DNA of 63,017 nucleotides, filler included, from Octopus bimaculoides (GCF_001194135.2; 5 parts of 4 records of this genome joined end to end with filler, not necessarily neighbours in it); one strand, 5' to 3'; positions 1,478 through 24,755 are shown, counted from the first letter of the whole stretch. Numbers and translations: made by a program. Notes: generated from the sequence alone by a model not told the origin.

Positions 1478-1922
1478 AATGGCTAAAAATGGCTAAAGCT
1501 GGCCAATACACCTTAAAGGAGAAGATACAAGAAGAATTTTTGGAATGTAAAATTTGTTTTGAACCTTATGTGAAACCCAAAGCCCTTCCTTGCTTGCATT
1601 CATTTTGTGCAGAATGCCTAAAGGATTATGTTCGAAAAAATCCTGACAAAAACGCTATGCGTTTTTGCTGTCCAATTTGCCGGAAGGAGATACCAATGCC
1701 ACCTAGAGGCATTGATGACTTCCAAGACAATTTCTGGCTTCTTAGCCTCTCTAATTCTTTGGAAGAAGGCGAAGATGAATGCCGCACTTCTTGCAATGGT
1801 AAAAATGCACGTAGTAATGTGTGGACAACTCAAAAATGGAATCACCAAGCAAAAAATGTAACTACAGCATCAAACCCATTGTATCCACCCTCATTCCAAG
1901 AACTAAAACTCCGTGGATTTGA
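1478..1922 (+). CDS. Exon encoding an N-terminal C3HC4 RING finger of TRIM2/3/56 type (no B-box follows); likely start ATG 1489; spliced at 3' end
   Basis: C-x2-C (CKIC), PCLHSFCAECL, CPICR and TRIM-like tail IDDFQDNFWLLSL. Acceptor ttttcAG at 1476-1477. The ORF-track stop TAA (1924-1926) sits inside a canonical donor GA|GTAAGT (GT 1923-1924, phase 2). Confidence 0.9.
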
Positions 1923-2964
1923 GTAAGTTGTTCATAATTTTTTTTTATCTGATGTTAAGAAACCATTGTTGTGTTGGTTGTCACATTTGCTTTACTTCCT
2001 TGTAGATTTAATAAAACTAAATAGCACAAGAGTAATGTACAACAGTGAGGAAAGTAAACAGTATTAGTTATATACTGGTTCAATCCAGTTCAGTTATTTT
2101 GTTTTCCTTGCTGAGTCTGGAGGAAGGGGCAATGCACATGACTTTCTATGTTGTCCATGACCGAAAAGCTTGGTATCATTAATATTCCATTGAAACTGTT
2201 GTGAGTCAACACCATCAGAGAAGACATGAGCTAGAAGAAGATTGCAGGAGGCCAATGTTCAGGAGGAGGAAGGACTGAGTATATAGGGTAGTGGTGGGTG
2301 CAACTAGAGTGATAGGAGTGGGGAAGACTAGTAAGTCAGGGATGCTTGAGTGGAGGAGGTACTAGTCCAGCCACTTTGTGGAACAGAGGCCATTTCACTT
2401 TGGCCTCTGTTCCTCAGAGGCCATAGTATACAAATATACTTGTCCTTCCCCTTCTCCTTTAGAAATCTATGACCTTGTGCTAGTGTATGTAATCATTATT
2501 TTGGGGTGGTCAAGAAGCTTCTGAGACAGTGAAATTGCTTACTGCTCAATTGAATATCCCCCCAAAAAAGTCATGAAGACCCACAATTCCACAGCTAACT
2601 CATTTCTAATATCCCTAGCACTTCCTAATTAAGAAATTATTATTATTATTACTCTTTTTAATTGTTTATTGCTGTAATTGTTGTTGTTGTTAATCTTGTT
2701 AATCAATTTCCACCATTGATTAGTTTTCAGTTTTCAAAAACAACATTGGTTACAAAAATATAATTTGATCAGATATTCTTATCCTGTGATCTTTGAACTA
2801 TTATTATTAAATTTCAAGAGATCAGTCATTTATACAATAACCCAAGTTTATTTAACCCTTCATAACCATATTTTTAATTGAAATATGCTTTCTATTTGTT
2901 TTTAATCCAAGAATTCAGATGGGTTTAGTAAAATATCATCATTATAGTTTTAATGTCTACATAG

Positions 2965-3250
2965 GCACAGGAGTGGCTGTGTGGTAAGTAGCTTTCTTAC
3001 CAACCACATGGTTCTGGGTTCAGTCCCACTGTGAGTAGATTTGGTAGATGGAAACTGAAAGAAACCCATCGTATGTATATATATATGTATTTGTGTTTAT
3101 GTCTCTGTCACTTAGCAGTTTGGCAAAAAGAGACCAATAGAATAAGTACTAGGCTTACAAAAGAATAACACCTGGGCTTGATTTGTTCAACTAAAGGCAG
3201 TGCTCCAGCATGACCGCTGTTAAATGACTGAAGCAAATAAAAGAATAAAA
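2965..3250 (+). mobile_element. Composite tRNA/CORE-like SINE (family A head, internal microsatellite, family D tail), internally deleted copy
   Basis: GGAGTGGCTGTGTGGTAAG...GGTTCAGTCCC head and ...CCAGCATG...GACTGAAGCAAATAAAAG tail shared with many other copies. Confidence 0.75.
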
Positions 3251-6087
3251 GAATATTCATACTTGCATGGATCAGACAAGAGCATGTGTTGGGGAAGAGC
3301 TTTTATGGCTGGATGCCCTTCTTGATGCCAACTCTCATCTCCAACTCTGCAGACATGGCTAAGAACAATACTGTATGAACAAGTCTTTAGTTCACAAAGA
3401 TTGCTCAACATGTTGAGATATGTCAACAAGCCTGGACATGCTTTTTCAATATCAATCATCATCATAATCATCATTTAATGTTCATCTTCCATGCTAGAAT
3501 GGGTTGGACAGTTTGGCAGAAGCTGGCAAACCAGAGAGCTGCACCAAGCTCCAATCTGTTTCGGCATGATTTCTGTGGTTGAATGTCCTTCCTAACACCA
3601 ACCACTTTACAGAGTGTACTGGATGCGTTTTATGTGGCACCAGCACCAGCGAGGTATATTCAGCATAGCTTTTATAGCTGGATGCACCTCCTAAGGCTAA
3701 CCACTTTTCAGAGTGTACTGGATGCAGTGGGGTGAGATCCAGGATGTTTTTTTTTGGATGTTGCCCAAAGGTTTTGAGAAAAATCGCAATTCGTAACAAA
3801 TGGAGCCATTTGTATGTATTCTAACTTTGTTGTGGCAGACCATATGCATACGAAACAGAAATACTATGAAACTGCTGGAAATAAAATAACAATGTTATTA
3901 TATTTGCAACAGTGCAGTGAGTATTGATTTACCTATGGAAAACTACACTTGTGTATCATCATCATCATCGTTTAACGTCCATCTTCCATGCTAGCATGGG
4001 TGGAATGGTACCACAAGAGCTGGCCAGGCCGAAGCATGCACCAGACTTCTGTGACTATTTTGGCAGGATTTTTACAGCTGGACGCCCTTCCACTCAGCCA
4101 ACCACTCAGCTAAGTGGACTTAGTGTTTTTTATGTGGCACATGCACAAGCAAAGTGAGTAGTGCTTTTTACACGGCACAAGCACAGGTGAGGTCAGTTTT
4201 AGCAAGGTTTTTACAGCTGGATGCCCTTCCTAACACCAACCCTGCAGCAGAGTTGACTTAGTGCTTTATCATAACTTAATAACATGGAAAAAAATATAAC
4301 CATTATTAAAGTTCAAGCTTGTATTTTCAAAATTTGGTCCCGCTTTTTTGGCATCGACTTGGCTAGAAAGAGTGTTGCCCAGGCAACTAGGGCAATAATC
4401 CCTGTATCCGCCACTATAAGTGAATGACACCATCCGTATGAACAGTGAGACCTTTGTTAACAATCACTGAATACATGTGATGACGAAGGGAAATCTGAAC
4501 ACATTTGCAAAAACACACAAACACACATACATATACATTTACATATGGAGATAAGTATACATCAGACTTCTTCCAGTTTTCATCTCCTGAATCCACTCAC
4601 AAGGATTTGATTAACCTGAGGGTACCATAGAAAGCTTTTGCCCAGGGTGCCACACAATGGGATTGAACTTAAAACTGTGTGGTTGGGAAGTGAAATTCTT
4701 TACCACACAGCCATGTCTGGGCCTACAAGGATTTAGTAAAATGATTTTGTCCTAATTAAGCTGGTGCTTGAGGTACATAGCTTAACAAAGTGTTCTTAAA
4801 ATTGATGGGAGTTTTTTCTTAATTTAAATTTGAACATTTTAATAAAAGAAGTGTTGTATACAGAAATTAGAATCAGAAGCAGTCCATAGTGAGTTGGCAT
4901 CAAAAGGGTCAATCTTTTAAAAATTGTTTCTTTGATTTATTTATTTTTTCTTTAAAAATATGTTAATTGGCTTAAAAAATAGTCTGTTATTTTTTTTTCC
5001 TTGAAAAATGTGGCTGTTATGTAGAGTATGGTACATTAAAAAAAAAACAAAAAAACATATGGCTGTTTGCTTGGTGTATGATGCAAATTTCAGATATAAC
5101 ATTCAATGGATTTCTTTGATAAAGGGCAATAAAACTACTTTGGTTATGGAGATAGAGAAAAATGTCTGACTATCAGATAGAGACAAATTTATATCAGTGC
5201 TGATCATTTTGTGCTTAGAAGGCATTCATTGCACTTATAAGCATTACTCCACTCCTATACATGCTCGAACACACACACATACTGTTATACATCTAATTCT
5301 ATTTCACTGAGTCTGTCATAAAACAGTATTTTAGCTTTTTTGATGATGTAGTTTGTTTTTTTCTTTCCAAATAAAGAGTCAGTGTGTGCTTAAGAAGCTT
5401 GCATTCCCCAACCATTTGGTCCCGAGTTCAATCCTTCATGTGGCACCTTGGGCAAGTGTTTTCTACTATAGCCTCGAGCCGACCAAAGTCTTATGAGTAG
5501 ATTCGGTGGACAAAAACGGAAAGATGCCTCCTCGTGTGTATGTGTATGTGTGTGTGTGTGCACGCACGTGTATGTGTGTGAGTTGTCTTCAATAATCATG
5601 ACATCACATGATTATTGTATACAAGTGTCACTTTATCTGTGTCATAAAACCCCCTCCACTTAAAAGACTATCCTCATGGGAGGTGCCACATAAAAAGCCC
5701 CCAGTGCACTCTACAGAGTGGTTGGTGGGGTATTGGGAAGGGCATCCAGCCATAGAAACCATGCCAGAACAGACAATGGAACCTGGTGCTGCTCCTGGCC
5801 ATACCAGCTCCTGTCAAACCACACAACTCCCGCCAGCATGGGAAACAGATAGTAAGTGATGATGATGATGATGACTATTATTATTTAGGACAATCATAAT
5901 GCAGCGAGCTGGCAGAATCATTAGCATACTGGGCGAAATGCTTCACAGCAATTCACATTCTGAGTTCAAATTGTGCCAAGGTCAGCTTTGCCTTTCATCC
6001 TTTCAAAGTCAATAAAATAAGTACCAGTTAGGCTCTGCAGTCAATGGTATGGCCCTAACAGCATGGATGACTACCTTGTGATTGCTT

Positions 6088-6221
6088 ACTCTTTTACTTG
6101 TTTCAGTCATTTGACTGTGGCCATGCTGGAGCACTGCCTTTAGTTGAACAAATCAACCTCAGGACTTACTCTTTGTAAGCCTAGCTGTCAAGCGATGATG
6201 GAGGGACAAACACAAACACAC

Positions 6222-6273
<52 letters not shown>

Positions 6274-6435
6274 GATGGGCTCCTTTCAGTTTCCATCTAC
6301 CAAATCCACTCACAAGGCATTGGTCGGGCCAAGGCTATAGTAGAAAACACTTGCCCAAGGTGCCACACTGTAGGACTGAACCTGGAACCATGAGGTTCGG
6401 AAGCAAGCTATTTGCCACACAGCCACTCCTGCACC
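6088..6435 (-). mobile_element. Composite SINE A-microsatellite-D, near full length
   Basis: Tail, (CA)/(TA)n core and head in fixed order. Similar full or partial copies at about 4555-4730, 5390-5690, 12105-12720, 16881-17222, 18190-18540, 19590-19750, 20455-20820, 49690-50018, 52410-52790, 59050-59245, 59680-59800, 61190-61620, 62770-63017. Confidence 0.8.
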
Positions 6436-6955
6436 TTGTCCAAATGTTTTGCAAAATACTTCTGTGCAAATGCCCTGACCTATCACATTGATAATTTAAA
6501 TGATGTTAGTATTTGTCTTCTCTGTCAGAAGTGACTTTTACTTTCTATTTCTTGCAAATTAATGAAAAAGAAAGAAAAAATTGTAAAAAAATATTTTTAA
6601 AAAATTTAAAAAAGCAGTGACAAAGCAATGAAAAATTTCTGCTCATGTACAACTGGAAAAGTATAAGAAGTGATAAAAGTAGGGAAGTTTAGGAAAATAA
6701 AAACATATTGGTTTTGATTTCTGAGAAGCTGAAGTGGAAAGATTCATGTCTCAGGAGTGTTGGATTTTTTTTCTTGATAGAAATTATATTTTCAAATTTG
6801 TACACTAAAATCAGTCAATATAGGAAAGAGAAAGAGTGAGGAGAGAGAGAGAGAGTTCCTCTCCAACATTATTCCAACCAATGAACAAATTCTCTGGAGA
6901 TTCAAATACATTTACCACTTGCCAATTGCTAAAACTTCATAATTTTCCCAGACAG

Positions 6956-6973
6956 ATTGAAAGAACAAGTTAG
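6956..6973 (+). CDS. Candidate 18-nt frame-preserving micro-exon (LKEQV) between the RING and SH2 exons
   Basis: ttttcccagacAG acceptor, AG|GTGAGT donor, phase 2/2 and stop-free in the RING frame. Confidence 0.25.
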   Translation: MERTS

Positions 6974-7417
6974 GTGAGTGTCGTGATTTAATTATGAAGT
7001 TGACTTTTGTGAAAATTTGTGTTTTGTTAATGGAGTTAAGGAAATCAAAATCCTGACGTCCTTAGACTGGATTCCATTCTATTCTGTTGCAATTATTTTA
7101 GATTGGTTTCAGGGTGTGGTTAACATACTTAATAGTCTTAACTACTTAGCAAATAGGACTTTGTTGCTACAGCTAAAGAGATGTAGTAACTTAATTTGGC
7201 CAGGCGTGTGATGTAGGCATTCTGATTAATTAAGCGTGTGTTCTGATTTAGAAGGTGGTGATGTATTTTGATCATGAACCAGAACACACATGCATGCGTA
7301 TGCACACACACACATGTGTGTGCACACGCACATGTGTACACACATGCACACACTAAGGGTGGGGACACTTTAGTCAGAGAATGGTAAGGTGACTGATGTG
7401 ATTCAGTCAACATCATC

Positions 7418-7810
7418 ATCATTCATCATCGTCGTTTAATGTCCGCTTTCCATGCTAGCATGGGTTGAATGATTTGACTGAGGACTGGTGAACCAGATGG
7501 CTACACCAGGCTCCATCTGATTTGGCAGAGTTTCTACAGCTGGATGCCCTTCCTAATGCCAACCACTCTGAGAGTGTAGTGGGTGCTTTTACGTGCCACC
7601 GGCACGAAGGCCAGTNNNNNNNNNNGTTTCTACAGCTGGATGCCCTTCCTAATGCCAACCACTCTGAGAGTGTAGTGGGTGCTTTTACGTGCCACCGGCA
7701 CGAAGGCCAGTCAGGCGGTTACTGGCAACGGCCACGCTCGAAATGGTGTATTTTACGTGCCACCCGCACAAGAGCCAGTCCAGGGGCACTGGCAACGATC
7801 TCGTTCAGTA
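7418..7810 (-). mobile_element. RTE-tail-related retroposon, family C, (GAT)n tail
   Basis: catcatcgtttaa..tccgctttccatgctagcatggg...ctggatgcccttcctaa motif. Copies at about 1-66, 3461-3800, 3955-4260, 5690-5875, 7895-8205, 9860-10110, 12260-12500, 14290-14430, 23890-24325, 48621-48863. Confidence 0.8.
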
Positions 7811-7819
7811 TCTTTACAG

Positions 7820-8364
7820 CAGGGTTTCTCAACCATTTTTTTACCTATGGACCCCACTTTGTTTTTTATTTTACTCAAGTGGACCCTCTTGGCCATTCAT
7901 CATCATCATCATCTAACGTCCATTGTCGATGCTGGCGTGGATTGGATGGTTTGACCAGGGCTGGCACACTGGAAGGCTGCACCAGACTCCGGTTTGATTT
8001 GGCATGGTTGTCTACGGCTGGATGTCCTTCCTAATGCCAACCTCTCCGAGAGTGTAATGGGTGTTTTTACATGTCACTTGCATGACACCGGTATCTGCCA
8101 CAACTACGATTTTGCTTGGCTTGATGGGTCTTCTTCTCAAGCACGACATAATGCCAAAGGTCTCAGTCATTGCCTCCGTGAGGCCCAACACTCAATGTTT
8201 AAAAATATCCTATTATATTTTTACAATTAAATATTATGAGGAATTGTATAAGAAAAAATGTTAAAATATTTTGTGTATTGTAGAAGTATAACCAATTTAT
8301 CGCACATAAATTTTAACAGCAAAATCTCATATGGACCCCTAGGGGTTTCTGCTGTAAACCACTG
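7820..8364. mobile_element. hAT-like MITE interrupted by a family C insertion
   Basis: Ends CAGGGTTTCTCAACC and ...GTAAACCACTG; flanking 8-mers CTTTACAG and ATTTACAT match at 6/8 (degenerate 8-bp TSD). Confidence 0.5.
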
Positions 8365-10280
8365 ATTTACATGGACATTATTAGGGTATTTATTAAAGTG
8401 AAATCCTTTTTTCTCAATTTCTCTTTTATAATTGGCAAGTATTATATTCACTTTGATGATTAATAATAGACGTTTTAAGACCAAGGCTTTCATATTAATA
8501 AAATAGGACTGTTTATTGCAAAGATACTGGTCTGTTTCTATGATAGACTGCTAAGTTGTTTGGCTATTAACATAAATATTGATCCATTGGGGGAGCAGAA
8601 CCATCAAGTCATTTTATGTTACTTTAAAGGGTTGGGGGGGGGGTACCTCCCTCCTCGCCTAAAAATTTGGAATTCCCTCTTCTTGATTTGTAAGTTTCAT
8701 ATGTTGGCTGTGTCAGATTATTTCTCAATTTCTAACAGAAAAAATAATATATATATGTATATATATATATCCACACACACACACACACACATACGAAAAT
8801 AGTGCTAATAGTTCCTATAAAATACCATATCTTGGAACTATTTTATGGTAATTGAATCAATTATCGTAAAATATCATCATGAACTTGCATTTAGTTAATA
8901 GCTGTCAAAATCTGATTTCAAAGGTCTAATGCATTTTGATTCATTGTGAAATACCAACTGTAGAATTTGGTTTACTAAAAATTAATAGGAGGCATAGCTT
9001 GTATAGGTTATGACATTCACAACAACAGGGAGATATGCCATTTATTTCTTGAAATGGGGGAAAAAAAGGAATTTTTGCATGTTATTCTTTTTAATCTGGG
9101 AAGAAAAAAGAATAAATGAAAAAATAAAAACGTAATAAATTCCCGAATCCAACCATCAACTTTGGTACAAAATCTTGATGCATTAATTGGTATAGAATTT
9201 GAGAGAAAGGAAACAGCTTTTAGTTAGTCGCGTTTGTAGCCAGATCTACTAAGTCAAGTTTTCAACTAAAAAGTTATGTTTACTTTGGAGAATATTATAT
9301 AAGCAGGCTATATATATGCATCATCATCATCATCCAGCATTTTAAATCTGGGTTTTGTCCCTGGTGACAGAGGTGGCCAGATCTACCTCAATGCCATAGC
9401 AACTGAGGTAGGCATGTGCAGCCCACCCCAACCTTTGGGCTGGCTGGCTGATGCCCATTCTCCTTTGCTAGCATGAGGCTCTTTTGGAGCTGGGTTTTCT
9501 ACGGGGAGCATGCTCTTGCTTACCCCAACCTCAGTTTCTAAATATTTAGCTAATTGAAGCAATCAAGAAGTAAATATTAGAAAATAAAAGAAAAAAAAAA
9601 TGAAGTTTTCTTTCTGAAACTGGGATTAAAAGTTCTAATTCTAGTTGTATTATAATATAATGTATTTAACTACCTGAACCTGACTTTGAATTTTTAATGA
9701 ATATAGAAATATATTAAGCTGAGTATCCATATTATGCAAACAACCTTCTAATTGGCTTGATTATATGTGAAAACAGTACAACTGTCTAGTATTCTTCACA
9801 GCATGTATGTAAATATGTTTTGTCATGTGAACATATATGTGTGTGTGTGTTTGTGTGTGGCATGTAAAAAGCACCATTCAAGCATGGTCATTGCCAGTGC
9901 CACCTGATTGGCTCCCGTGCTAGTGGCATGTAAAAAGCACCCACTACACTCTCGGAGTAGTTGGCATTAGGAAGGGCATCCAGCTGTAGAAACTTTGCCA
10001 GATCAGATTGGAGCCTGGTGCAGCCTTCTGGCTTGCCAGTCCTCAATCAAATTGTCCAACCCATGCCAGCATGGAAAGCAGACGTTAAACGATAACGAAG
10101 ATGATGATGATATATATGTATACAGAGAGAGAGAGAGAGAGGGAGAGAGATATGTGTGTACTTGTGTATACATCACTATATAAATAACATTTTTTTACAT
10201 GTATTCACATATGTAGTATATATAATGGGTGCATGCATATTAAAACAGACTCCACCTAGTAACTCAAGTCAATGTTAATA

Positions 10281-10281
<1 letters not shown>

Positions 10282-10356
<75 letters not shown>

Positions 10357-11545
10357 NNNNNNNNNNNNNNNNNNNNNNNNNNNNNNNNNNNNNNNNNNNN
10401 NNNNNNNNNNNNNNNNNNNNNNNNNNNNNNNNNNNNNNNNNNNNNNNNNNNNNNNNNNNNNNNNNNNNNNNNNNNNNNNNNNNNNNNNNNNNNNNNNNNN
10501 NNNNNNNNNNNNNNNNNNNNNNNNNNNNNNNNNNNNNNNNNNNNNNNNNNNNNNNNNNNNNNNNNNNNNNNNNNNNNNNNNNNNNNNNNNNNNNNNNNNN
10601 NNNNNNNNNNNNNNNNNNNNNNNNNNNNNNNNNNNNNNNNNNNNNNNNNNNNNNNNNNNNNNNNNNNNNNNNNNNNNNNNNNNNNNNNNNNNNNNNNNNN
10701 NNNNNNNNNNNNNNNNNNNNNNNNNNNNNNNNNNNNNNNNNNNNNNNNNNNNNNNNNNNNNNNNNNNNNNNNNNNNNNNNNNNNNNNNNNNNNNNNNNNN
10801 NNNNNNNNNNNNNNNNNNNNNNNNNNNNNNNNNNNNNNNNNNNNNNNNNNNNNNNNNNNNNNNNNNNNNNNNNNNNNNNNNNNNNNNNNNNNNNNNNNNN
10901 NNNNNNNNNNNNNNNNNNNNNNNNNNNNNNNNNNNNNNNNNNNNNNNNNNNNNNNNNNNNNNNNNNNNNNNNNNNNNNNNNNNNNNNNNNNNNNNNNNNN
11001 NNNNNNNNNNNNNNNNNNNNNNNNNNNNNNNNNNNNNNNNNNNNNNNNNNNNNNNNNNNNNNNNNNNNNNNNNNNNNNNNNNNNNNNNNNNNNNNNNNNN
11101 NNNNNNNNNNNNNNNNNNNNNNNNNNNNNNNNNNNNNNNNNNNNNNNNNNNNNNNNNNNNNNNNNNNNNNNNNNNNNNGTATGTAGGTATGTATGTAGGT
11201 ATGTGTGTGTGTATGTATTTATGTATATTTATATGTACACACACACACACACACAGATATTCACACACACACACACACACAGATATTCACACACATCCAC
11301 TCTCCTATATATAAGTGTATGTATGTATGTAAATGTGTGTGTGTGTGTGTGTGCATGTTATGTATGTATGTATGTGTGTGTGTATGTATTTATGTGTGTA
11401 TGTATGTATGTATGTAAATATGTATGTTGTGTGTGTGTTTATGTATGTATATATATACTCATATTCACACACATTCACTCTCCACACATCCAACCGTATC
11501 TGTGTGTGTGTGTGTGTGTGTGTGCATCCATATATGAATAAGCTT
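10282..11545. repeat. (CA)n / (TG,TA)n microsatellite block around a gap
   Basis: Visible directly; explains the HT/VC/YI-rich pseudo-ORFs. Confidence 0.95.
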
Positions 11546-12212
11546 GTGTAGCAGTGCAAATGAATGAATGCGTAAGTGAAGGAGATGTGCAAATGAACAC
11601 ATGTCCTGCAGAACAAAATATTATTTTCCTGCAAGATAGTTCCTCTAAAAACTGCATGTGCGTATCGAAATGGTTTACTCCACTCCACAAATAAGAGTTT
11701 AGTCTTCTAACTTACAATAATAATATACATTGAAAGCAAAACTGGTTTCTCTTGTTATTAAAATCATCTTCATTTCAGTGGATTCCTATTATATGAAGAG
11801 GTATTTGCTGACATCTTCGTCATATGGTCGTTATGAAGGACCATCAGTGTTTAAAACTACTTACAATTATAACACACTTATGAATACTTTAAACACTACA
11901 TATGTCCCTTAGTAATTATGTTACCACTTGTAATAGTGTCTCTTATAATTAATGTAATTGCTTCATTTCTTTGATAATGAAGTCTTGATACATTTCATAG
12001 AAAATTTTAATCAAATTTTGTAATGAAAGTATAAAGAAGACAAAAATTGATGTGCCCCAGTATGGCCAAAGCTAAATGGTTGAAACATCTTTATGACTGG
12101 AGTGGCTGTGTGATAAGAAGCTTGCTTCCCAACCCCATGGTTCTGGTTTCAGTCCCACTGTGTGGCCAACCAAAGTCTTGAGAGTGGATTTGGTAGATGG
12201 AAACTGAAAGAA

Positions 12213-12261
<49 letters not shown>

Positions 12262-13460
12262 CATGCAGGCTCTAATCTGATCTGGCAAGGTTTTTACAGC
12301 TGGATACCCTTCCTAACGCCAATCACTCAGAGACTGTAGTTGGTGCTATCATCATCATCATTATCATCTATTCTCCATGGTGACATAGGTTGGATGGTTT
12401 ACAGGAGCTGGCTAGGAAGAAGATTGCACCAGGCTTCAGTGTGCTTTGGCATGGTTTATTACTGCCGGTTGCTCTTCCTAACATCATCATCCTTGCGGAT
12501 ACACACACACACACACGTGTGTGTGTGTGTGTCTGTGTTTGTCTCTCACCACCACTTGACAAGTGTTGGTTTGTTTACATCCCCATAATTTAGCGGTTCA
12601 GCCTAAGAGGCCGATAGAATTAGTACCAGGGTTTTAAAGAAATAGGTCCTGGGATCAATTCATTTAACTAAAAAATTTTCCAAGGTGGTACCCCAGCATG
12701 GCCACAGAAAAGCTAAAAGTTAAAAGACAACCAAGTCAAATACTAAGGTTGATTTAATATTCCTATTAAAGCCTCCTAGCTTTGCATGGAATTATAATAG
12801 AAGACTTGAGACTTAGAAGTGAAAATGCCATAAAAACAACCTGGTATTGATTATCTTACTATAAAGGTTTACCAGTATATTTATTCATCTCGTGCACCTT
12901 ACATATGCATGGCTCTGTGATTAGTTCTCAGCTGGAAGATGTTTAAATACAACTTTAGCAATATAAAGTTTTACTGTGCCTCATAAAATGTGGAACAAGT
13001 TATTCATATGAAAATTAGAGGGAAAAAAAAATTATTTAAAATAGTGAAAGTCAAGTTAAACTGTAACGAGCAACTGAAACAAAATTTCAGGTTACAGTGG
13101 AGATTTTATTAACTTTTACTAATTTACATGTCTAATTAGAACTGAAGCTAGACTGTTATGCGAATGGCCTACTAAAATATCTGCTTCAGGTTTTACAGCT
13201 TGGTTGGTAGGTTGGCATTTCACTTGGTTGGGTTGGTTGATACCTCTCACTTGCAATGTCTCGTTCATAATCTTGCGTATAACATAAATGCAGTTAAATA
13301 ACAGCCTTGCGAAAATTAATCATATATGTTAATTGCCAGGAATGTTGCAGAAAGGAAACTAAAGATGGCAAGGGAAGCAACAATGGCAGCAGCCATCATG
13401 ATGAAAGCAACAATGGCGGTAATAGTGATGAAGATTGCAACAATAACATTGGTGGTGTTA

Positions 13461-13479
13461 ATGCACTGCTGTCTCACTC

Positions 13480-13522
<43 letters not shown>

Positions 13523-14110
13523 GCAATAATAATAAACATGGGTGTTTTGTTCATCATCTGTAAACAAGCCTTATTCAGGGACCTCTTGTGCAAGATGGGC
13601 TACTTGAGCTGAAGAAAATTCTAACTGGGCCCCACCTGCAAGGTCATGCACTGTTTATCTTGATGTAAGATCACCACGTTGCGCACATGTGGTCGTGATG
13701 CATGTGCCTGGTGTATCCTTATCTGATGCGTAGCCGTGATGGATATACTGGGCTTTGTATAATTGTACTCTAGTGTCACTTTGATGGAATGCACTGCTCT
13801 CTCACTCAATAATAATAATAATAAACATGGGTGTTTCGTTTATCATCCTTTAGCAACCCTTATTCAGGGACCTTTTGTGTGAGATGGGCTACTCGACTTC
13901 AAGAAAATTCTAACAAGACCTCACCTGCAATGTCATGCGCTGTTTGTCTTGATATGAGATCACCATGTCGTGCACATATAGTTGTGATGCATATGCCTGG
14001 TGTACACTTATGGGATGGGTAGTCACAATGGGTATACTGGGCTTCATATATTTGTATCCCAGTGTCACTTTGATGGCATGCACTGCTCTCTCATTCAATA
14101 ATAATAATAA
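13461..14110 (+). repeat. Head-to-tail tandem of a ~289-bp unit bounded by (AAT)n (two full units plus a 3' end)
   Basis: aaacatgggtgtt starts at 13534 and 13823; atgcactgct.tctca.tcaataata ends near 13480, 13808 and 14097. Confidence 0.85.
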
Positions 14111-14639
14111 CTATTTCTAACTGTAGCAGAAGGGCATACATTTTTGGATGGAAGAGTAGTGTCAGTTGTAATGATTGCAGTAGATTGAATGTTACCTTAT
14201 TTTATTGATCCTGGAAAAATGGAAATAAACTCTGCTTTGGTGGGATTTTAACAGAGACAGCAATGCCACTAAACATCATAACACACTGTGGTTAGTGTTA
14301 GGAAGGGCATCCAGCTGCAGAAACTTTGCCAGATCAGATTGGAGCTTGGTGCAGCCTTCTAGCTCGCCAGCCCACAGTCAAACTGTCCAACCCATGGAAA
14401 GCAGGACGTTAAACACCGATGAAGATGATTGTGTCATTGCAAATAAGTTATAAATCCTTTAACTCAGATCTGGTAATTTAAACAAATATGTCACTTTGAC
14501 TTCACTTCTGTTCTTTACCGCATATCTAATTGGATTATCTTTGTTATTGCAATAATCACTAACCTCCATTTGTTTTTGTATTGTTTGCAGTATGTATGTA
14601 TAAACACGTTTGTCTGTGTCAATATGTTCTAGGGTAATG

Positions 14640-15610
<971 letters not shown>

Positions 15611-17086
15611 TTCATTTGGTGTTTCAATAATTTTATATTCAGCATGTAAAACTTGTTTTTTTAAACAATCTTTGTGATTTTTACTTATTGCTATTATCAA
15701 TTTGTTTTCAATATGGATTCATTTGTCATCTATGGCTATATCAACTTGCAGTGTAAACTCTGTATATATATATTAGCTTGTATGATTATTTGTTTGTATC
15801 TTAGTCTACATATGCTTCTGTGTTATACACCATCTATTGTTATTTTTATATTTTTCTTTCCGTGGCTCCTACATTAATCTTAATATAGTGTCTGGTTTAA
15901 AGTGCCTAACTTAATATTATCATTATTGATATTGGTGGTAGTAGTAGTAGTAGTGGTAGTAGTAGCAGCAGCAGCAGCAGCAGCAGCATTGCTATTATTG
16001 TTATCATTTTTGTTTTTATTTTCTATTTTTACCGAACTTTTTATCAGAATGCTACCTTTTCTTTTGAACACAAATGTTTGGAATGCAGGAATTAGACGTC
16101 TACATGAAAAGCTTTATGTATTCATTGCTTGGGTGACTTGCATTGCAAAGGATGTAGTAGTATATTACACTGCTTTATATTTTTTTTATTTATTTATTTA
16201 TTTTTTTTTTTTAGACTCTTATCTCCATCACCTTGTTCTCTTTCATCTATTTATCCAGCAATTTCTATTTTCCATGTTAACAATCAAGTGAAAGTAAATA
16301 CGAAGGAAATGATTGTCTGGCTCAACTAGTTTATTTGTGACTTCCAACAGATGCTGATTCAGCTTATGGAGGAGTGTTCAGCTAGAAAACTGCTCTAAAG
16401 AAAACAAACAAACACTATAAGTAAAACTGTTAAATATGCACCATATCAAAAGCAAAATGAACAATGATGAGTTTCAAGGAAAATACTTTAGAGACTGATT
16501 AGAAAGAAATAAACAAAAACCTCCCATTAAAATGATTGTTAGATTAATTAAGGTGAAAACTCGCTTTGATGGAATGTTATATTTCATCTATTCAGATACC
16601 AAATTCTGTGATCTCTGTCGAAATCTGTGTTATATTGATTGATTTTTTAGATAGCGAAACAGCTGTAGAAGTTTTCCCATAATTTACATTTGTTTACTTT
16701 TAATTCAATTTAATTCAAAATTAAGTGGAACAAGATTGCCATTCCCTTGCAGGACAGACAGACAAGACTGAATTCTTCGATAGTTTAAAGTGGGCACACA
16801 CAACTCAGTGTTAAAATCATGCTAAAATTAACTTGACTTTTGGTACTTAAAACAGTTAATATTATAACTACCTATTTTTTTCTTTTACTTGTTTCACTCA
16901 TTTGATTGTGACCATGCTGGAGCAGCGCCTTTAGACTTATTCTTTGTGAGCCTAGTACTTATCCTATTGGTCTCTTTTGCCGAACCGCTAAGTTACGAGG
17001 ACATAAACACACGAGCATTGGTTGTTAAGTGATGTGGGGGGGGGGACACATTGACATGCAAACATACATGCACACACACACATGCA

Positions 17087-17157
<71 letters not shown>

Positions 17158-17839
17158 CGGGCTTCTTTTAGTTTCTGTCTACCAAATCCACTCACAAAGC
17201 TTTGGTCAGCCCGAGGCTATTGTACTTATTTTATCAACCCTGAAGGAATGAAATACCAAAATTGACCTTGGTAGAATTTGAACTCAGAATGTAAAGACAG
17301 ACAAAATGCCGCTAAGCCATTGGCTGAGCATGCTATCAATTCTACCAGCTCGCTGCTTTATCATACAACATAATAATGATGGAAGTACAAAGGTGGAAGT
17401 TTAAGTTTTTGTTTTTTCCGTTTTCATATTTCTGTCCTTTCTTTTTCCTCACAAAGTTTTGTTATGGTCTTTCTTTAGGTCTTCATGGTTTGGAACAATA
17501 AGTACTAGTTTGACTAAGTAGGTTAGTGTGGAACTGACAAGACAATTGATGTAGCAGTTAAATGTGTTGTAATTGCTGCAAATTCCGGTCCTAACTCGAG
17601 CAGTTACTCAATAACTTAGCTGCAATAAACTTGCTCTCCAAGACGGAAAAAAAAAACTTTAGTTCTTTACAGCATTGACATTTATAGTAAGGAAATAAAA
17701 GGAAAGTGAAAAAAAATGAAAATGTCATTCATTCTGAAAGAGAAAATTGAATTCAAGGAAATATGGAAATATTTAAGAACTTTACAAAATTAAATTGTCA
17801 TTAGATTAAGTAATTGAGTTTTTGCTGTCAAGTCTATAG

Positions 17840-17872
17840 CAATGACATTGAAGATTTGTCTTTGCATTACAA
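17840..17872 (+). CDS. Candidate 33-nt frame-preserving exon (NDIEDLSLHY) before the SH2 exon
   Basis: tttttgctgtcaagtctatAG acceptor, AA|GTAACT donor, phase 2/2; the join gives ...DLSLHYNWYFGK. Confidence 0.35.
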
Positions 17873-20005
17873 GTAACTTTAGAAAATGGTATAACACTAG
17901 GCAAAGCGTTTAGCTGATTCACGCTTCTGTAACTTCAGAACTATGTTCAAATCCCACCAGATCTAACTCGATACTTATCTTCAACTGTTTCTAAATTCTG
18001 ATGCGGATTATGACCGAAACAATATCTGTTTTTTGTGAAGTACTGTGTAGCTGGTCTGTGTGCATTAAATTATCTGTTTAATTCATATTTATATCTGGCT
18101 TTTCAGGATAGAAATATTCCTTTTTGATATTGAACCTATGTACACCTACATAACATTGTGTGTGTGTGATGGGGGAGGGCTAAGGGCATGCATCACATCC
18201 CGACAACATGGTTTTCGGTTCACTCTCACTGTGTGGCATCTTGGGCAAGTGTATTCTATTTAGCACCAAACTGGCCAAAGCCTTGTGAGTAGATTTGCTA
18301 GATAGAAAGTGAAAGTAGCTCATCGTGTGTCTGTGCGTGTCTGTTTGTGCCTCCCTCTCTTGACATCACATGGCACTTGTAAACAAGTGCTACCCTCATA
18401 CAAGTGATGTCATTCATTTTCAGTCTTCCATAAAAAACATGTCTCACCATGGGAAAATATTGCCTTGTTTGGTAACAGTAAGAGCATCCAGCTATAGAAA
18501 ATCTGCCTCAAATTCTATCTAATACACGCAAGCTTAGAAAATAGATGTTAAAATATATATTATTTCTCTGCATATGAGCATGTATGTACAAATGTATCCA
18601 AATGTTTATATTTACATATTTTTCCAACTACTATTATAATAATTGGGGATTACCATCTGTAAATTATAAATTTTAATCTTATCTTAATAATTAAAAGAAT
18701 ACTCGATCTGAAATTATTTCATCTATTACTGATCTGCAAAAAAAAAAAAAAAGAGAGAGAAAGAAAGAAAATAAATGATGTTAGTATTACTCACCTTTGC
18801 TGAGAGATCTTTCTTTAAATGCACCTGCTGCTAAGGAATAATCAACCAAACATAGAAATAGAAGGATTTAAATGATTTCATCTGAAGCTGAATCTACACA
18901 CTACAGCTTATCTATAGAGAGCATTGCTAATTTTTTCTTTCATAATGTCTCTTATATTTCATGTATATAATTAGAGAAAGAAATTATTTTTAAATGTCAG
19001 AAAGTTATTCCAACAAATTCACAGTATGTTTCTGAGAAAAGCATCTTTCTAAACATGTTTTGACATTTTCTTAAATTAGATTTTTTTTTAAAGTAGTTTT
19101 TTTTCTTTTTAATTTGATATGGTCATTTTTAGTTTATTACTAAAATAATGAATAAATTAAGAATTTTGGACTTGTGGAGATTGTTTTCATAACGCCATTT
19201 TGTATGAAGGTTGAGCGACATGAAAATAAATTGAACGTGTGTGTGTGTGTGTGTGTAGGGAAAATTTCCTTTGATATATTTTACCATAATTTGAATCTAA
19301 GGACTTCACTTAGTACACTTGGTTTAGTTGTATCTGTCAAAAATTGATAGAAACTACCTTCAACGTTATAATCTTATAAAAAAAACAATTGGAACTTCTA
19401 ATGATGCATAAACATTTAGAAATTCATATAGCCCTGACCATTTGTCATTCAGCAAGATGGCCAAATTGATGGCATACCTTTGAGACAGGTTGGTAGTTTG
19501 CATGCTGTAACATTTTCACTATGGTGTATCAGTGGTCAGAATATTTAGCTCTTTTACTAACTCTAGATTATTTTTTTTAAATATCAGGTATGACTGTTTG
19601 GTAAGAAGCATGCTTCCTAATCACATGGTTCTGGGTTTCAGAACTATATGGCACTTTGGACAAGTGTCTCCTACTCTAACCCCAGACCAACAAAAGCCTT
19701 GTGAGTGGATTTGGTAGCTGTAAACTGAAAGAACTTGTTGTATATATATATATAAGTCTGGAATTTTGGGGATAGGGCCTAGCCGATTACATCAACCCCA
19801 AAGGGGTAAAAGGTAAAGTCGACCTTGGTGGAATTTGAATTCAGAAACAATGTACAATAATAATGCAATGTAAGATAATGAAAAAAGCCAGGTGAATTAA
19901 GCAGCAGAAGATGGGTGGGGATGGACATAATAATTAACCTGAAATGTTAACAGAGAAAAATTATGCATTTTTATTTACATTTCTTTTCTCTTTTTTTATT
20001 TGCAG

Positions 20006-20109
20006 TTGGTATTTTGGAAAAGTGAGTCGGAATGCTTCTGAAGAATGGCTTCTACATCCTGGTCTTCAGAAAGGCTCTTTTCTTATTCGCCAAGGAGAGG
20101 CTCTTCCAG
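20006..20109 (+). CDS. Exon encoding the N-terminal half of a Src-family-like SH2 domain (WYFGKVSRNASEEWLLHPGLQKGSFLIRQGEALP)
   Basis: Pyrimidine tract + tgcAG at 20004-20005; donor G|GTAACT at 20110; 104 nt, phase 2 in and phase 1 out. WYFG motif, alphaA Arg and FLIR (FLVR) motif present. This frame is not in the ORF track. Confidence 0.9.
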
Positions 20110-20632
20110 GTAACTAATTTGTTGTCATTTTTCTGTGCCTTATCTGAGTTTGTAATTGTTTGTTTCCCCAGCAATTTCAAGAATCTCCATCTAATTGTGG
20201 AATTTCAAATTAGTTTCCATAATAGAATTGCGTGTTTTGGTTCATGATTGGATCATTTGATGAATTGTAATCTTATTGATCTGAGGTTAAATTTGTCTTT
20301 AAGATTTCTACATGTATTTTACCAGTTTTGTATGAGAAATGTTTAAGCTAAAAATTAACTGCAATTTAAGACATTTCATTAAAATAATCACTCAGTTTAA
20401 TTATACATTGTGAACCTCAGCCAAGTATTCTAGTATTGTCGAAATATAATAGCAGAGTTGTCTTTTGTATTTCATTTGTCTCAGTCATTGCACTGTGGCC
20501 ATGCTGGAGCTCTACCTTGAAAGGTTTAGTCAAGGAGATCAACTCCAACATTTATTTTAAAATCTGGTATTTGTTCTGTTATTCTCTTTTGCCAAATTTC
20601 AAAGTTACTGGGACATACACAAACCAACACCA

Positions 20633-20676
<44 letters not shown>

Positions 20677-20747
20677 TATGTGTATGTGTATAAATATATA
20701 TATTTNNNNNNNNNNAAAGTTACTGGGACATACACAAACCAACACCA

Positions 20748-20791
<44 letters not shown>

Positions 20792-20817
20792 TATGTGTAT
20801 GTGTATAAATATATATA

Positions 20818-20856
<39 letters not shown>

Positions 20857-20858
20857 GT

Positions 20859-21625
20859 ATGCAGGGTGTGATGGGTAAAATTTTGCCATTTTATATTTTT
20901 AATTTTGCACATGTACATTGCTTGTTTTTGATTTTGTCAACTACACAGTATAGTAGGGTCAGTCGGGCACCGTTTGTGACAAAAACAGCACCATGGCGCA
21001 ATTCACTTTGCCAGAAATTTGGAAACGACATGCTGTACTGCTTGGCATTTGCACCAGAAGCTCCAATATGAACATTTGAAAGTGTTTGGGTATCAATCTG
21101 AGGACAGTGCAGAGGATTCAGAAAGAGTTGGATGAGTCAAATGATGATTACAAAGGTATGGTAGCTCTGATAAGAAAAGAACTTCTGGATTTGTTGGTGA
21201 GATCCAGGCCACGGTTGATAACAATCCCTCCAAGTCAATCAAGTCCATCACCAGGGACATGGGAGTAGTTTCTCATCAAGCAGGTAGTGCATGAAGACAT
21301 TCAGTATTTCTCATACAAGGTGAGAAAGGGCCAGTTTTTATCCCAAGCCATCAAGGACAAGAGGAAAGACCATACTATGAAGCTTTTGAACAAACTCAAG
21401 CATCAGAACATGCTTTGGTTTTTCTCCAACAAGAAAGAGTTCTGCCAGGATCAGATGGTGAACACACAGAACAATCACTGGCTTGCCGTGTCCCCAAAAC
21501 ATGTACCGAGAGTAATAAAAATCAAGCACCCAGTCAACATCACGGTACTTGGAGTGATCACTAGTAATGGCAACATTATGCCTCCAGTCATCTTCCCACA
21601 TGGCCTCAGACTCAACACAGAGCAA
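20859..21625 (+). mobile_element. Decayed Tc1/mariner-superfamily (maT/DD37D-like) transposon
   Basis: TATGCAGGGTG terminus; HTH-like LGINLRTVQRI; WFFSNKKEF..D..VNTQNNHW and KHPVNITVLGVITSNGNIMPP motifs. First catalytic Asp reads N; stops, frameshifts and 3' truncation. Confidence 0.75.
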
Positions 21626-24474
21626 GACACTCTATTTCATGTTGCTCCAGTTCACTCAGCTGTAGAAATGAATTGTGACATCACTGGCACCAAGCTGTAT
21701 CGGCCTTTGCCTTTCCCTTGGATAACATTGAATGCACAAAGAGGGGAGGTTTGTATCCATGGGCGACTGCTGGTCTTCCATAAACANNNNNNNNNNNNNN
21801 NNNNNNNNNNNNNNNNNNNNNNNNNNNNNNNNNNNNNNNNNNNNNNNNNNNNNNNNNNNNNNNNNNNNNNNNNNNNNNNNNNNNNNNNNNNNNNNNNNNN
21901 NNNNNNNNNNNNNNNNNNNNNNNNNNNNNNNNNNNNNNNNNNNNNNNNNNNNNNNNNNGGGTGGGGGGGGGGTCTTTAACCCTATTTTTAATTATGGTTA
22001 TGATGTTGTTTATGATTAATGGTGATGATGATGAGGACAAGGAAGAGAGAAATTTTTTTTTACTTAGTGCCAGCCGATTTCTAGGAATATTTTCAAGTTA
22101 ACAGAATTGATAAAAAAAAAAAAACAAGTAGTAAAATGCCTCAACAAAAAAAAAAGAGAAAAATAAAAATGGTAAAAGAGAGTATTGCTCACAGAATGTT
22201 AAATGGTATGAAACCACAGAACTTTATGTTGAGATATATGTAAGAGACACCAGTGTGTGTGTGTGTGAAGATATTTCCGAACAATTTACACAGCAAAGTA
22301 CAATAACCTTTACTCTGGATCCATTCAGCTCACACTGTACCCATGTCATCAAATGTTAATATATTATTTCTCTTTTAATACTGATGATGATGATACCGTT
22401 TCTCTTTCTCTCTTTTATTTTTGCAATCTTCCTACCACCACCACCACTGCTACTACATGTGATCTCCTAGTTGTAACTATGGGTGCAACGTATAAAACTG
22501 ACTCTCACAATTATTATTGCAATGTATTGTCAGTAGTCGCTGACAGCAGGTAATGGTAAAATTGGGACACTTTGCGCATCCTGTTGTTAGCTTTTCCCCT
22601 TGTCACTAATGATTATTTATACAAACACACACACACACACATGTACACACTCACATACATACATTTTAAATGCATACATACACACACACAACATACATCC
22701 ATACATGTACATACATGTCTACATACATACACTTACATATGTACATTCATGCGTACGTGCCACCATATGTGTGCACACACATACATACACACACACACAC
22801 ACACACACCCAGAGGCATGCACACTCGGGCAAGATAGTTTCGGTTCTAATAACACTGATAGTCTCCAACAAATTGTTTTTTCTGACTTCCTTTCAACATA
22901 TGAAAATCTACCAGCTATATACAAACAACAATAAACATTTTGCTTTTTTTTCATGTTTTTTTTTTTTGAAAATTCACTGGCGCATCACATACACACACAC
23001 CATGGCTTTCCTTAGTTTCATCGTTTAGCTTTTAGACTGAGCCATATCCAGCCTCTCATATCTACCCTGCAATATTCTTTTCTACTTTAGGCACAAGCTC
23101 CAAAATTTTGGGGGAGGGGGCCAGTCGATTAGATTGACCCCAGTATGCAACTGGTACTTAAATTATCAACTCCAAAAGGATGAAAAGCAAAGTTATGATA
23201 ATTTCATGATCATAATATTACTATACATGCACATTATATATATAATACAAATGATAAATGGGTATATGCATATATACATACATGTATGTACATACCTACA
23301 TCTACATGTATATATAGATGCATATCTGGGTACAGGACATTAAAAACAAAACAGACAAAATGAGGAACAGAGTACAGAAAACACACAGGCCACATAGAGA
23401 ACATTTCCTTCATCAGCTGCCACCATTCTAAAACTAAGCATTTCGAAGAGATATATATAATATATGTATCAGGATAAAAGGATAAAATCTATACAAGATT
23501 TATCAAGTAGTCAGCGTGGAAAACCAACTGAGGAAAAAATTAATACAAAGTATATAATTTTTTTCTTAAATATAAAATATATTACTATATCATAGGCTAT
23601 TACTATAAGTAACGCCTCACGCTCTAAAGGGACTCTAAAGTCAAACTACTTCAATAAATATACACAGGCACCGAAATTGTGGGAATGAACCTAGAAGAAG
23701 TTCCATTAAAAAAAGGTTTAGTTGTATATAATTAATGATTTCATGGTCAGCATGTATAATATTCTTTCCAGTCATCAATACGAACATAACCAGAAAATAT
23801 AAATACAAACATCTTTACATACCAAGCAAACGACAATAATGAGACCATAACTGTGGCCTATGTCAGTGCAGCATAACTGGCCCATTTAAGAGGATCCTTC
23901 AATCATTGGACAATAAACTGCACTTGCGAAGACCTGTTGAGGCAAGTGAAATCATTGTTGTGGTTGATGCCAGTACCACCTGATTGGCACTTGCGCCGGT
24001 GGCACATAAAAAGCACCATTTGAGCGTCGTCGATGCCAGTGCTGATTGTTGCTTGTGCCACCTGACTGGCTCCCATGCCGGTGGCACGTAAAAAGTGCCA
24101 TTCAAGTGTGGTCAATGCCAGTACTGGCATGACTGGCCCTTTGCTGATGGCATGTAAAAAGCACCGACTACACTCTCGGAGTGGTTGGCGTTAGGAAGGG
24201 CATCCAGCTGTAGAAACTTTGCCACATTGGATTGGTGCCCAGGGCAGCCTTCTGGCTTGCCAGCCCTCCGTCAAACCGTCCACCCATGCCAGCATGGAAA
24301 GTGGATGTTAAACGATGATGATGATATATATATCTTCGGTCTGACATTAGCAATGCCAACCTTTCTATGACACCCTCTTCTCCTGCTTGACAATGTCACA
24401 TCAGGTTTCAGTAACCTTTTCCTTCAGTAATAGATTAGTTATTCATTTAATTATTAAAGGTATCTTCCATCCTC

Positions 24475-24713
24475 GTTACCACCACCACCACCACTACAAA
24501 CACCATCAACTCCACCACCACCACCACCACCATCATCATCATTGTCATCACCAACACCACTACTATGAACATCACCACCACCACCAACATCATCATCACC
24601 TCCATCATCATCATCATCGTCTAGTCTTTAATGCTGAAGTCTTACTCATCCATTTTATGCGCAAGATTCATTGGATGATATAACTTTGATGTAATCCACC
24701 CCAGCTGCTATTT

Positions 24714-24755
<42 letters not shown>

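Follow-up and report, generated by a model that had tools for sequence, protein, structure and literature searches.

The locus examined here raises the question of whether two exons of an octopus genome, one encoding a RING domain and the other the first half of an SH2 domain, belong to a single gene and, if so, what kind of protein that gene encodes. The window, by which we mean the whole stretch of DNA that was analysed, comprises 63,017 nucleotides (filler included) from Octopus bimaculoides (GCF_001194135.2), made of five parts of four records joined end to end, and the two exons lie on its plus strand at 1478-1922 (RING) and 20006-20109 (SH2). A first-pass annotation had proposed that a TRIM-type RING exon is here spliced in frame to a Src-family SH2 exon. 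We consider it probable that these are consecutive exons of one gene, the octopus copy of a conserved mollusc family, and that this, taken jointly with the mechanism proposed below, is the best explanation of the evidence. The family is present in at least two mollusc classes and is transcribed.

The RING exon ends at a phase-2 donor, GA/GTAAGT (slashes mark exon boundaries), at 1922/1923, and the TAA stop codon that closes its open reading frame (ORF) sits within that donor at 1924-1926, as the first-pass annotation had read it. The second exon, hereafter SH2a, has the boundaries ttgcag/T TGG ... CCA G/gtaact, and its T-TGG start at 20006, its phases and the proposed join all held. Since the RING exon leaves 2 nt and SH2a gives 1 nt, the phases fit, and the spliced exons read ...KLRGF-D-WYFGKVSR...FLIRQGEALP. 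The RING is complete (Pfam zf-C3HC4, E 5.5e-10; zf-RING_UBOX, E 5e-10), and its nearest solved structures are the RINGs of TRIM2, TRIM3 and TRIM56 (63-70 bits) against 36 bits for the next best, TRIM21, so that the label TRIM-type is well founded. This alignment spans residues 11-92, both flanking helices included (E 1e-18), and outside the family the best matches of the exon are RING-B-box proteins. Compared with the RING exons of the family the window peptide is 45-63% identical (closest members E 1e-34 to 3e-29 in the first search), and it shares their N-terminal, TRIM2/3-like flanks, SLKEKLQEEFL...CPxCRK...F.DNF.LLSL. Its tail, LYPPSFQELKLRGF-GA/GTAAGT, matches the family pattern LxPP[ST][PF]xE...R..[ED] followed by a phase-2 GA/GT donor, which is the same in all seven loci described below. 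SH2a matches profile positions 1-34 of 77 of the Pfam SH2 domain (E 2e-7), i.e., the first half of a Src-type SH2, and the closest solved domains are those of Yes, Src and Fgr. It is 74-86% identical to the orthologous exons and carries the family pattern WYFGKVSR.ASE.WLL...FL[IV]R.GE..P. Both phosphotyrosine-binding arginines, reported in the first-pass annotation as retained, are present (alphaA2, codon 20028-20030; betaB5, codon 20088-20090); the betaD4 His (KHYKI) is seen in orthologues only.

The two exons were compared across seven loci from six species, namely the window, L002, L005/L006, L007, L008 (Tegillarca) and L010 (Candidula). At all seven, a RING exon ends GA/GT[AG][AT]GT, and the next exon on that strand is 104 nt long and starts ag/N-TGG, with order and phase the same throughout. 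The intron between them is 339 nt in L002, 747 nt in L007, 1041 nt in Candidula, 1117 and 1122 nt in L005 and L006, 6109 nt in Tegillarca and 18,083 nt in the window, the last being the longest by far, and no exon intervenes in the others. In L002, a Logan contig, the GA/GTAAGT donor is followed 339 nt on by gacag/A TGG TAT TTT GGA. A search with the RING peptide matched ORF calls with one common end point, the same Glu in each. However, the Tegillarca donor reads GA/GTATGT, keeping the GT with no stop codon after it, and one ORF call (P0026) continues past the terminal Glu; the donor, not the stop, is therefore the conserved feature. A separate promoter together with SH4 and SH3 exons could not be accommodated in introns only a few hundred bases long.

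Transcripts agree with this structure. Full-length mRNAs with both domains, which the first-pass annotation had suggested looking for, were found in orthologues: four transcript contigs from four samples (L011-L014, 1.8-3.2 kb) and a fifth (L015, SRR6474597, 1.8 kb) each hold a single uninterrupted RING-SH2-kinase ORF of 512 or 507 residues. Because genomes have this sequence divided among at least eight exons, these contigs are spliced mRNA. Their junction, ...CAT GA^C TGG TAC TTT, is exactly the predicted GA/N-TGG join with no extra residues, and the candidate micro-exons at 6956-6973 and 17840-17872 are thus not needed. The sources of L011-L014 (JGI samples and runs of the ERR17194xx and ERR17191xx series) we take to be marine metatranscriptomes.

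Beyond SH2a, the orthologous loci carry further exons: one for the rest of the SH2 domain, one for the linker and glycine loop, and those of the kinase region. The second SH2 half and the kinase-like domain occur in each of the 12 orthologues checked. The RING-SH2 architecture first proposed is accordingly right in placing both domains on one chain but incomplete, as the protein also has a Src-like kinase domain without the HRD and DFG aspartates, encoded by exons outside the window. From N to C terminus the product consists of a TRIM2/3-like RING with its flanking helices, a low-complexity linker, a canonical SH2 domain of Src type and a Src-like kinase domain without the catalytic and metal-binding aspartates. 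In the corrected Tegillarca protein (521 residues) Pfam finds PK_Tyr (8.5e-83), SH2 (3.7e-19) and zf-C3HC4 (3e-8) and no other family, so no SOCS box in this full-length orthologue; B-box, coiled coil, NHL/filamin and SH3 were not found in the orthologues either. From the SH2 domain to the C terminus, this protein scores 345-366 bits against Fgr, Src and Hck and 289 bits against Abl, which bears out the description of the SH2 exon as Src-family.

In terms of gene structure, where a Src-family gene would have its SH3 exons there is a RING exon, which is joined to the SH2 exon in phase 2. The Tegillarca exons measure 412, 104, 171, 165, 260, 154, 132 and 179 nt. SRC exons 5-11 we take to be 104, 150, 156, 180+77, 154 and 132 nt, the vertebrate exon that starts at WYFG presumably being the one of 104 nt. 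An alignment of the family (A2) has small insertions that match the differences between the Tegillarca lengths and these presumed SRC lengths, and the 154- and 132-nt kinase exons equal their presumed SRC counterparts. Two kinase introns of the family lie at the same positions and in the same phases as in the canonical Aplysia Src locus (L016). At that locus a gap of 2,432 Ns (13158-15589) spans the expected SH3b and SH2 exons, and the canonical Aplysia Src model (P0254, also named 'SRK2') lacks an SH2 domain, the 2.4-kb gap lying over those exons.

The family is clearly set apart from canonical Src. A kinase-region profile scores family members at 489-610 bits and canonical Src kinases at no more than 344, and identity is 72% within the family versus approximately 42% to canonical Src. 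In a neighbour-joining tree the family is monophyletic on a long stem, with an inner branching that roughly follows mollusc relationships. A further neighbour-joining tree places the window copy in neither the gastropod nor the bivalve cluster. Mean column identity in the kinase-like region is 81% across gastropods and bivalves. Gene models or fragments were found in at least 11 named gastropods and bivalves and, with the seven loci and five mRNA contigs, support the in-frame RING-SH2 splice. Models with RING and SH2, with or without the kinase region, occur in Biomphalaria, Aplysia, Arion, Elysia, Candidula, Patella, Mya, Dreissena and Tegillarca; Pomacea and Lottia are represented by kinase-only fragments. 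RefSeq lists family members as 'tyrosine-protein kinase SRK2', 'SRK2-like' or 'SRK3-like' in Biomphalaria glabrata, Aplysia californica, Patella vulgata, Mya arenaria and Dreissena polymorpha, and further members are A0A0B6ZUP3 of Arion vulgaris (UniProt), RUS84391.1 of Elysia chlorotica, KAJ8310789.1 of Tegillarca, CAG5135275.1 of Candidula and WAR27446.1 of Mya.

What such a protein does may be approached from its RING. In the alignment of RING orthologues the eight zinc ligands, Ile22, Pro62 of CPxC and Arg65 after the last Cys are invariant, and the positions of the Ile, the Pro and the Arg are ones that normally contact the E2 or serve as the 'linchpin'. The RING thus appears to carry the sequence prerequisites of RING-type E3 ubiquitin ligases, E2-dependent ubiquitin transfer being putative. 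In TRIM proteins the helices flanking the RING mediate RING dimerisation, so that the TRIM-like helices make a dimeric RING a reasonable guess here. Judged by its domains, the protein is likely to be a phosphotyrosine-directed ubiquitin ligase. In the mechanism that we propose, the SH2 domain would dock the protein at phosphotyrosine sites, and the RING, probably dimeric as TRIM RINGs are, would recruit a charged E2, leading to ubiquitination of the protein bound there or of others close by. The kinase domain, dead but very strongly conserved, would act as scaffold, switch or docking module, and the expected net effect would be negative regulation of Src or receptor-tyrosine-kinase signalling, in the manner of Cbl or SOCS. 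As proof of principle, an engineered fusion of the Cbl RING with the Drk SH2 domain lowers EGFR signalling in Drosophila, part of its effect being competition with the endogenous adaptor (PMC3038869).

The same competition lends some weight to the alternative that survives best, which we nonetheless judge unlikely: a non-enzymatic decoy or scaffold, its RING serving for interaction or dimerisation only, that would compete with Src for phosphotyrosine sites and in this way dampen signalling. A dead kinase does speak for a lineage that tolerates the loss of catalysis. Against this, the E2-engagement residues (Ile after the first Cys pair, Pro of CPxC, Arg after the last Cys) are invariant in the family, and its nearest relatives are the RINGs of ubiquitin ligases.

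The kinase-like domain is probably a pseudokinase. In all 12 members checked HRD has become HRN (HRN[LI]G.RN), DFG has become GFG (AGFGMT) and the equivalent of Src Tyr416 is Phe (DPDFNF), and in each of them the chain stops just after FLHD, with no Tyr527 regulatory tail. The VAxK Lys, the alphaC Glu, GxGxF and APE are kept in the same 12. Two extra fragments also read HRN and lack the DFG Asp, one from Lottia (S-GFG) and one ORF call (P0241, GLG). With both aspartates lost together, phosphotransfer is very unlikely by what is established of kinase catalysis; the domain may still bind nucleotide, given that it retains both the VAVK Lys and the alphaC Glu. That the protein is an active tyrosine kinase, in keeping with its RefSeq name 'tyrosine-protein kinase SRK2-like', and that the RING is a regulatory or localisation add-on, is an improbable reading. 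The recognisable whole fold and the four retained features would suit it, and some kinases without canonical residues keep low activity, but the loss of both the HRD base and the Mg-binding Asp in every member checked, and of the activation-loop and C-terminal regulatory tyrosines too, argues the other way.

Several points weigh against the joint explanation. The transcript support comes from orthologues and none of it from the octopus itself. Three assembly gaps lie between the two exons, and a misjoin cannot be judged from the window by itself. The window copy is the most divergent member seen (54-63% identity over RING and SH2a), its second SH2 half and kinase-like exons fall outside the window, and HRN and GFG are read in orthologues only. 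The putative E3 activity, the predicted phosphotyrosine binding and the presumed absence of kinase activity are all deduced from sequence, and HER3, which likewise has HRN, reportedly keeps weak activity. An AlphaFold2 model of the Aplysia orthologue from a 12-sequence alignment (mean predicted local distance difference test score 40.6, predicted template modelling score 0.24) is too poor to speak to domain arrangement.

The assembly was considered gap by gap. All three gaps within 1478-20109 are intronic (7616-7625, 10357-11178 and 14961-15478), so that the reading frame across them is irrelevant and only the intron length is uncertain. The first is flanked by an exact 86-nt duplicate (7530-7615 = 7626-7711), which marks it as an unmerged contig overlap with continuous sequence; the second is set in (CA)n and (TG/TA)n and the third abuts (TTA)n. 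In the next intron a 10-N gap inside 20601-20820 is of the same overlap kind, flanked by an exact 105-nt duplicate (20601-20705 = 20716-20820). We also searched 1-24755 by tblastn with SRC, invertebrate Src, TRIM and full-length orthologue queries (the human SRC query being approximate). All queries together matched the RING and SH2a exons only; exons for SH3, B-box, NHL, the second half of the SH2 or the kinase were not found in 1-24755, in agreement with the first-pass annotation on B-box, SH3 and the missing half of the SH2 domain, and no coiled-coil exon after the RING was found in the window.

That the window copy is broken or an artefact, whether a pseudogene fragment or a scaffold misjoin, would suit the intronic gaps, the exceptional intron length, the divergence and the exons not seen within the window. 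We regard this as very improbable, for both exons have intact frames, functional residues and good splice sites, their order, strand and phase agree with every orthologous locus, and one of the gaps is merely an unmerged overlap. In another assembly (L009), moreover, there is an SH2a exon of the same subtype with 34 of 35 residues identical. There the exon aligns (84.6% nucleotide identity) and the introns do not, which makes L009 unusable as a check on the window assembly. The idea of two separate genes, one for a small RING-only protein ending at the TAA and, downstream, one for an ordinary Src-family kinase whose SH4 and SH3 exons the gaps or repeats conceal, is scarcely credible: the stop directly after the RING ORF, the stand-alone RING proteins of 125-180 residues given by ORF callers in many assemblies, the three gaps and a phase match that chance would give one time in three are outweighed by inter-exon distances of 339-1122 nt elsewhere, the stop-free Tegillarca donor, mRNA contigs that join the exons directly, and an SH3 exon found in no locus or family member searched.

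We return to a single RING-SH2-pseudokinase gene and to how it arose. The first-pass annotation had suggested that exon shuffling put a TRIM RING where the SH3 exon was; the gene structure fits such an event, in which a Src-family gene exchanged its SH4 and SH3 exons for a TRIM2/3-type RING exon, the origin itself being deduced from that structure. More tentatively, and as something short of an even prospect, the family may represent a third, independently evolved class of phosphotyrosine-directed ligase in molluscs beside Cbl and SOCS, formed by a RING-for-SH3 swap and then kinase death. The dead kinase would in that case keep Src-like docking or regulatory surfaces that aim or switch the ligase via Src's partners, and the window would extend the family outside gastropods and bivalves.

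Known systems each share part of this design. In the Src family (Src, Fyn, Yes, Fgr, Hck; invertebrate Src42A, Src64B, SRK) the SH2 domain, linker and kinase fold are the closest match, whereas the mollusc family lacks SH3, starts with Met-Ala, has HRN, GFG and a Phe at Tyr416, lacks a Tyr527 tail and forms a separate long-branch clade. TRIM2, TRIM3 and TRIM56, which are E3 ligases of the TRIM-NHL type, resemble it in the core of the RING and in the helices on either side. In the window and the orthologues, however, no B-box, coiled coil or NHL/filamin follows the RING, and the mollusc family is thus not a tripartite-motif protein. Cbl also has a phosphotyrosine reader and a RING E3 on one chain, with a comparable down-regulation of tyrosine-kinase signalling to be expected. 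Its divergent SH2, however, lies within a four-helix and EF-hand TKB region N-terminal to the RING, with a regulatory linker helix, whereas the mollusc order is RING, canonical Src-type SH2, pseudokinase, and the Cbl RING scores only 20-22 bits. SOCS proteins resemble the predicted function in being SH2-directed, but recruit the Rbx2 RING in trans via Elongin B/C and Cullin5, whereas the mollusc RING is in cis. HER3/ErbB3, which reads HRNLAARN, and JAK JH2 have likewise lost the HRD Asp while keeping a strongly conserved fold; the mollusc family differs in also lacking the DFG Asp and in being cytoplasmic, Src-derived and joined to a RING on the same chain. In Tribbles, too, a pseudokinase is combined with a RING ligase, but that ligase, COP1, is recruited in trans. 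The nearest design is the engineered RING-SH2(Drk) chimera, with a RING and then a canonical SH2 on one chain and EGFR down-regulation in vivo; it differs in being artificial, in combining the Cbl RING with the Grb2/Drk SH2 and in having no pseudokinase (PMC3038869).

The first-pass annotation knew of no characterised family with this architecture. A full-text literature search, with subscription-only literature outside it, found no published description of a natural RING-SH2-kinase family, and to that extent the statement stands; the architecture is, however, already public in databases as uncharacterised, automatically named models, among them 'tyrosine-protein kinase SRK2-like'. Should the predicted function be true, this would be a natural single-chain RING-SH2 ligase, a design otherwise known only as an engineered construct (PMC3038869), and would clearly illustrate how exon shuffling can make of a signalling kinase a probable antagonist of the pathway it came from. 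The family also offers a Src-derived pseudokinase for studying why a dead Src kinase domain is so well conserved. The kinase names in RefSeq and UniProt hide both the RING and the dead catalytic site, and several deposited models are wrong; as a result, surveys of mollusc kinomes and E3 ligases will misclassify family members.

Table 1. Features of the RING-SH2 locus in the window (positions counted from the first letter of the window).
Feature	Position	Strand	Description
RING exon, 5' untranslated start	1478..1488	+	after acceptor tttttcag/ at 1477/1478
Upstream ORF MAKNG*	1479-1496	+	ATG GCT AAA AAT GGC TAA; overlaps main start at 1489
RING exon, coding part	1489..1922	+	ATG at 1489; 434 nt = 144 codons + 2 nt; MAKAGQYTLKEKIQEEF...LYPPSFQELKLRGF
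C3HC4 RING core (residues 20-64)	1546..1680	+	eight zinc ligands, Ile after first Cys pair, Pro of CPxC, Arg after last Cys
Proline motif L-[YAC]-P-P-[ST]-[PF]-x-E	1879..1902	+	conserved in alignments; directly ahead of splice donor
Intron	1923..20005	+	nominal 18,083 nt; three assembly gaps, microsatellites, many repeats resembling short interspersed nuclear elements (SINE-like)
SH2 exon a	20006..20109	+	104 nt, phase 2 in / phase 1 out; encodes WYFGKVSRNASEEWLLHPGLQKGSFLIRQGEALP(G)
Next intron, start	20110..24755	+	two further gaps; SH2b and pseudokinase exons beyond this piece

The 5' end of the RING exon has features of its own. An element, AATGGCTAAnnATGGC, whose upstream ATG lies out of frame and 10 nt ahead of the main start codon, is kept in every orthologous locus and in the transcript contigs, and this element with its upstream ORF may control translation from within the 5' untranslated region. 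An upstream coding exon for SH4 and myristoylation, suggested by a conserved 'EWLxMA' before the ATG, was rejected, as transcripts have an in-frame stop there. That stop, upstream of the MA(K/R) start, means that the protein begins with Met-Ala and has no myristoylation signal, and that the conservation belongs to the element in the 5' untranslated region. A Met-Ala start is found in the window and in nearly all orthologue models, the exception being the Biomphalaria isoform X1 model (myristoylated Gly2 type). At the other end of the exon, the proline motif closes an otherwise variable, low-complexity RING-SH2 linker and could be a proline-directed phosphosite or a docking motif.

Among the deposited models, that of Tegillarca (KAJ8310789.1; L008 73845-76131) omits three kinase exons that are intact and includes two questionable ones upstream, that of Mya (WAR27446.1) is truncated, with unrelated sequence after the glycine loop, and that of Candidula is partial. 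At L007 16918-17209 and at L008 74115-74377, degenerate copies of the 3' end of the first kinase exon are repeated in tandem within the intron that follows it; they read ...GRLS.YLREG.G..L..SQL..I.AQ and represent a recurrent partial exon duplication at the same place in two species. Introns have also been gained and lost among family members. The Candidula RING exon is interrupted by an additional intron (L010 10001-10138 / 12442-12765), and in several ORF calls (P0054, P0061 and P0070) SH2a and SH2b are contiguous with intron-like flanks, pointing to intron loss or partly spliced RNA.

Within the window, two adjacent ORFs of 60 and 230 codons at 21086-21979 (plus strand), the second interrupted by a gap (21787-21958), look like a decayed mobile-element gene; Pfam gave no meaningful match for the intronic ORFs, these included. 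A tandem duplication of a 289-nt unit, its copies 83% identical, occupies 13519-14096. Together with runs of (CA)n, (TTA)n and (GAT)n, short interspersed repeat families in both orientations fill the introns (2963-3106, 5439-5546, 6206-6436, 7515-7711, 9918-10117, 12096-12375, 14249-14392, 19584-19754 and 24142-24340), and one of these families has a tRNA-like head (GGAGTGGCTGTGTGGTAAG...GGTTCTGGGTTCAGTCCCACTG).

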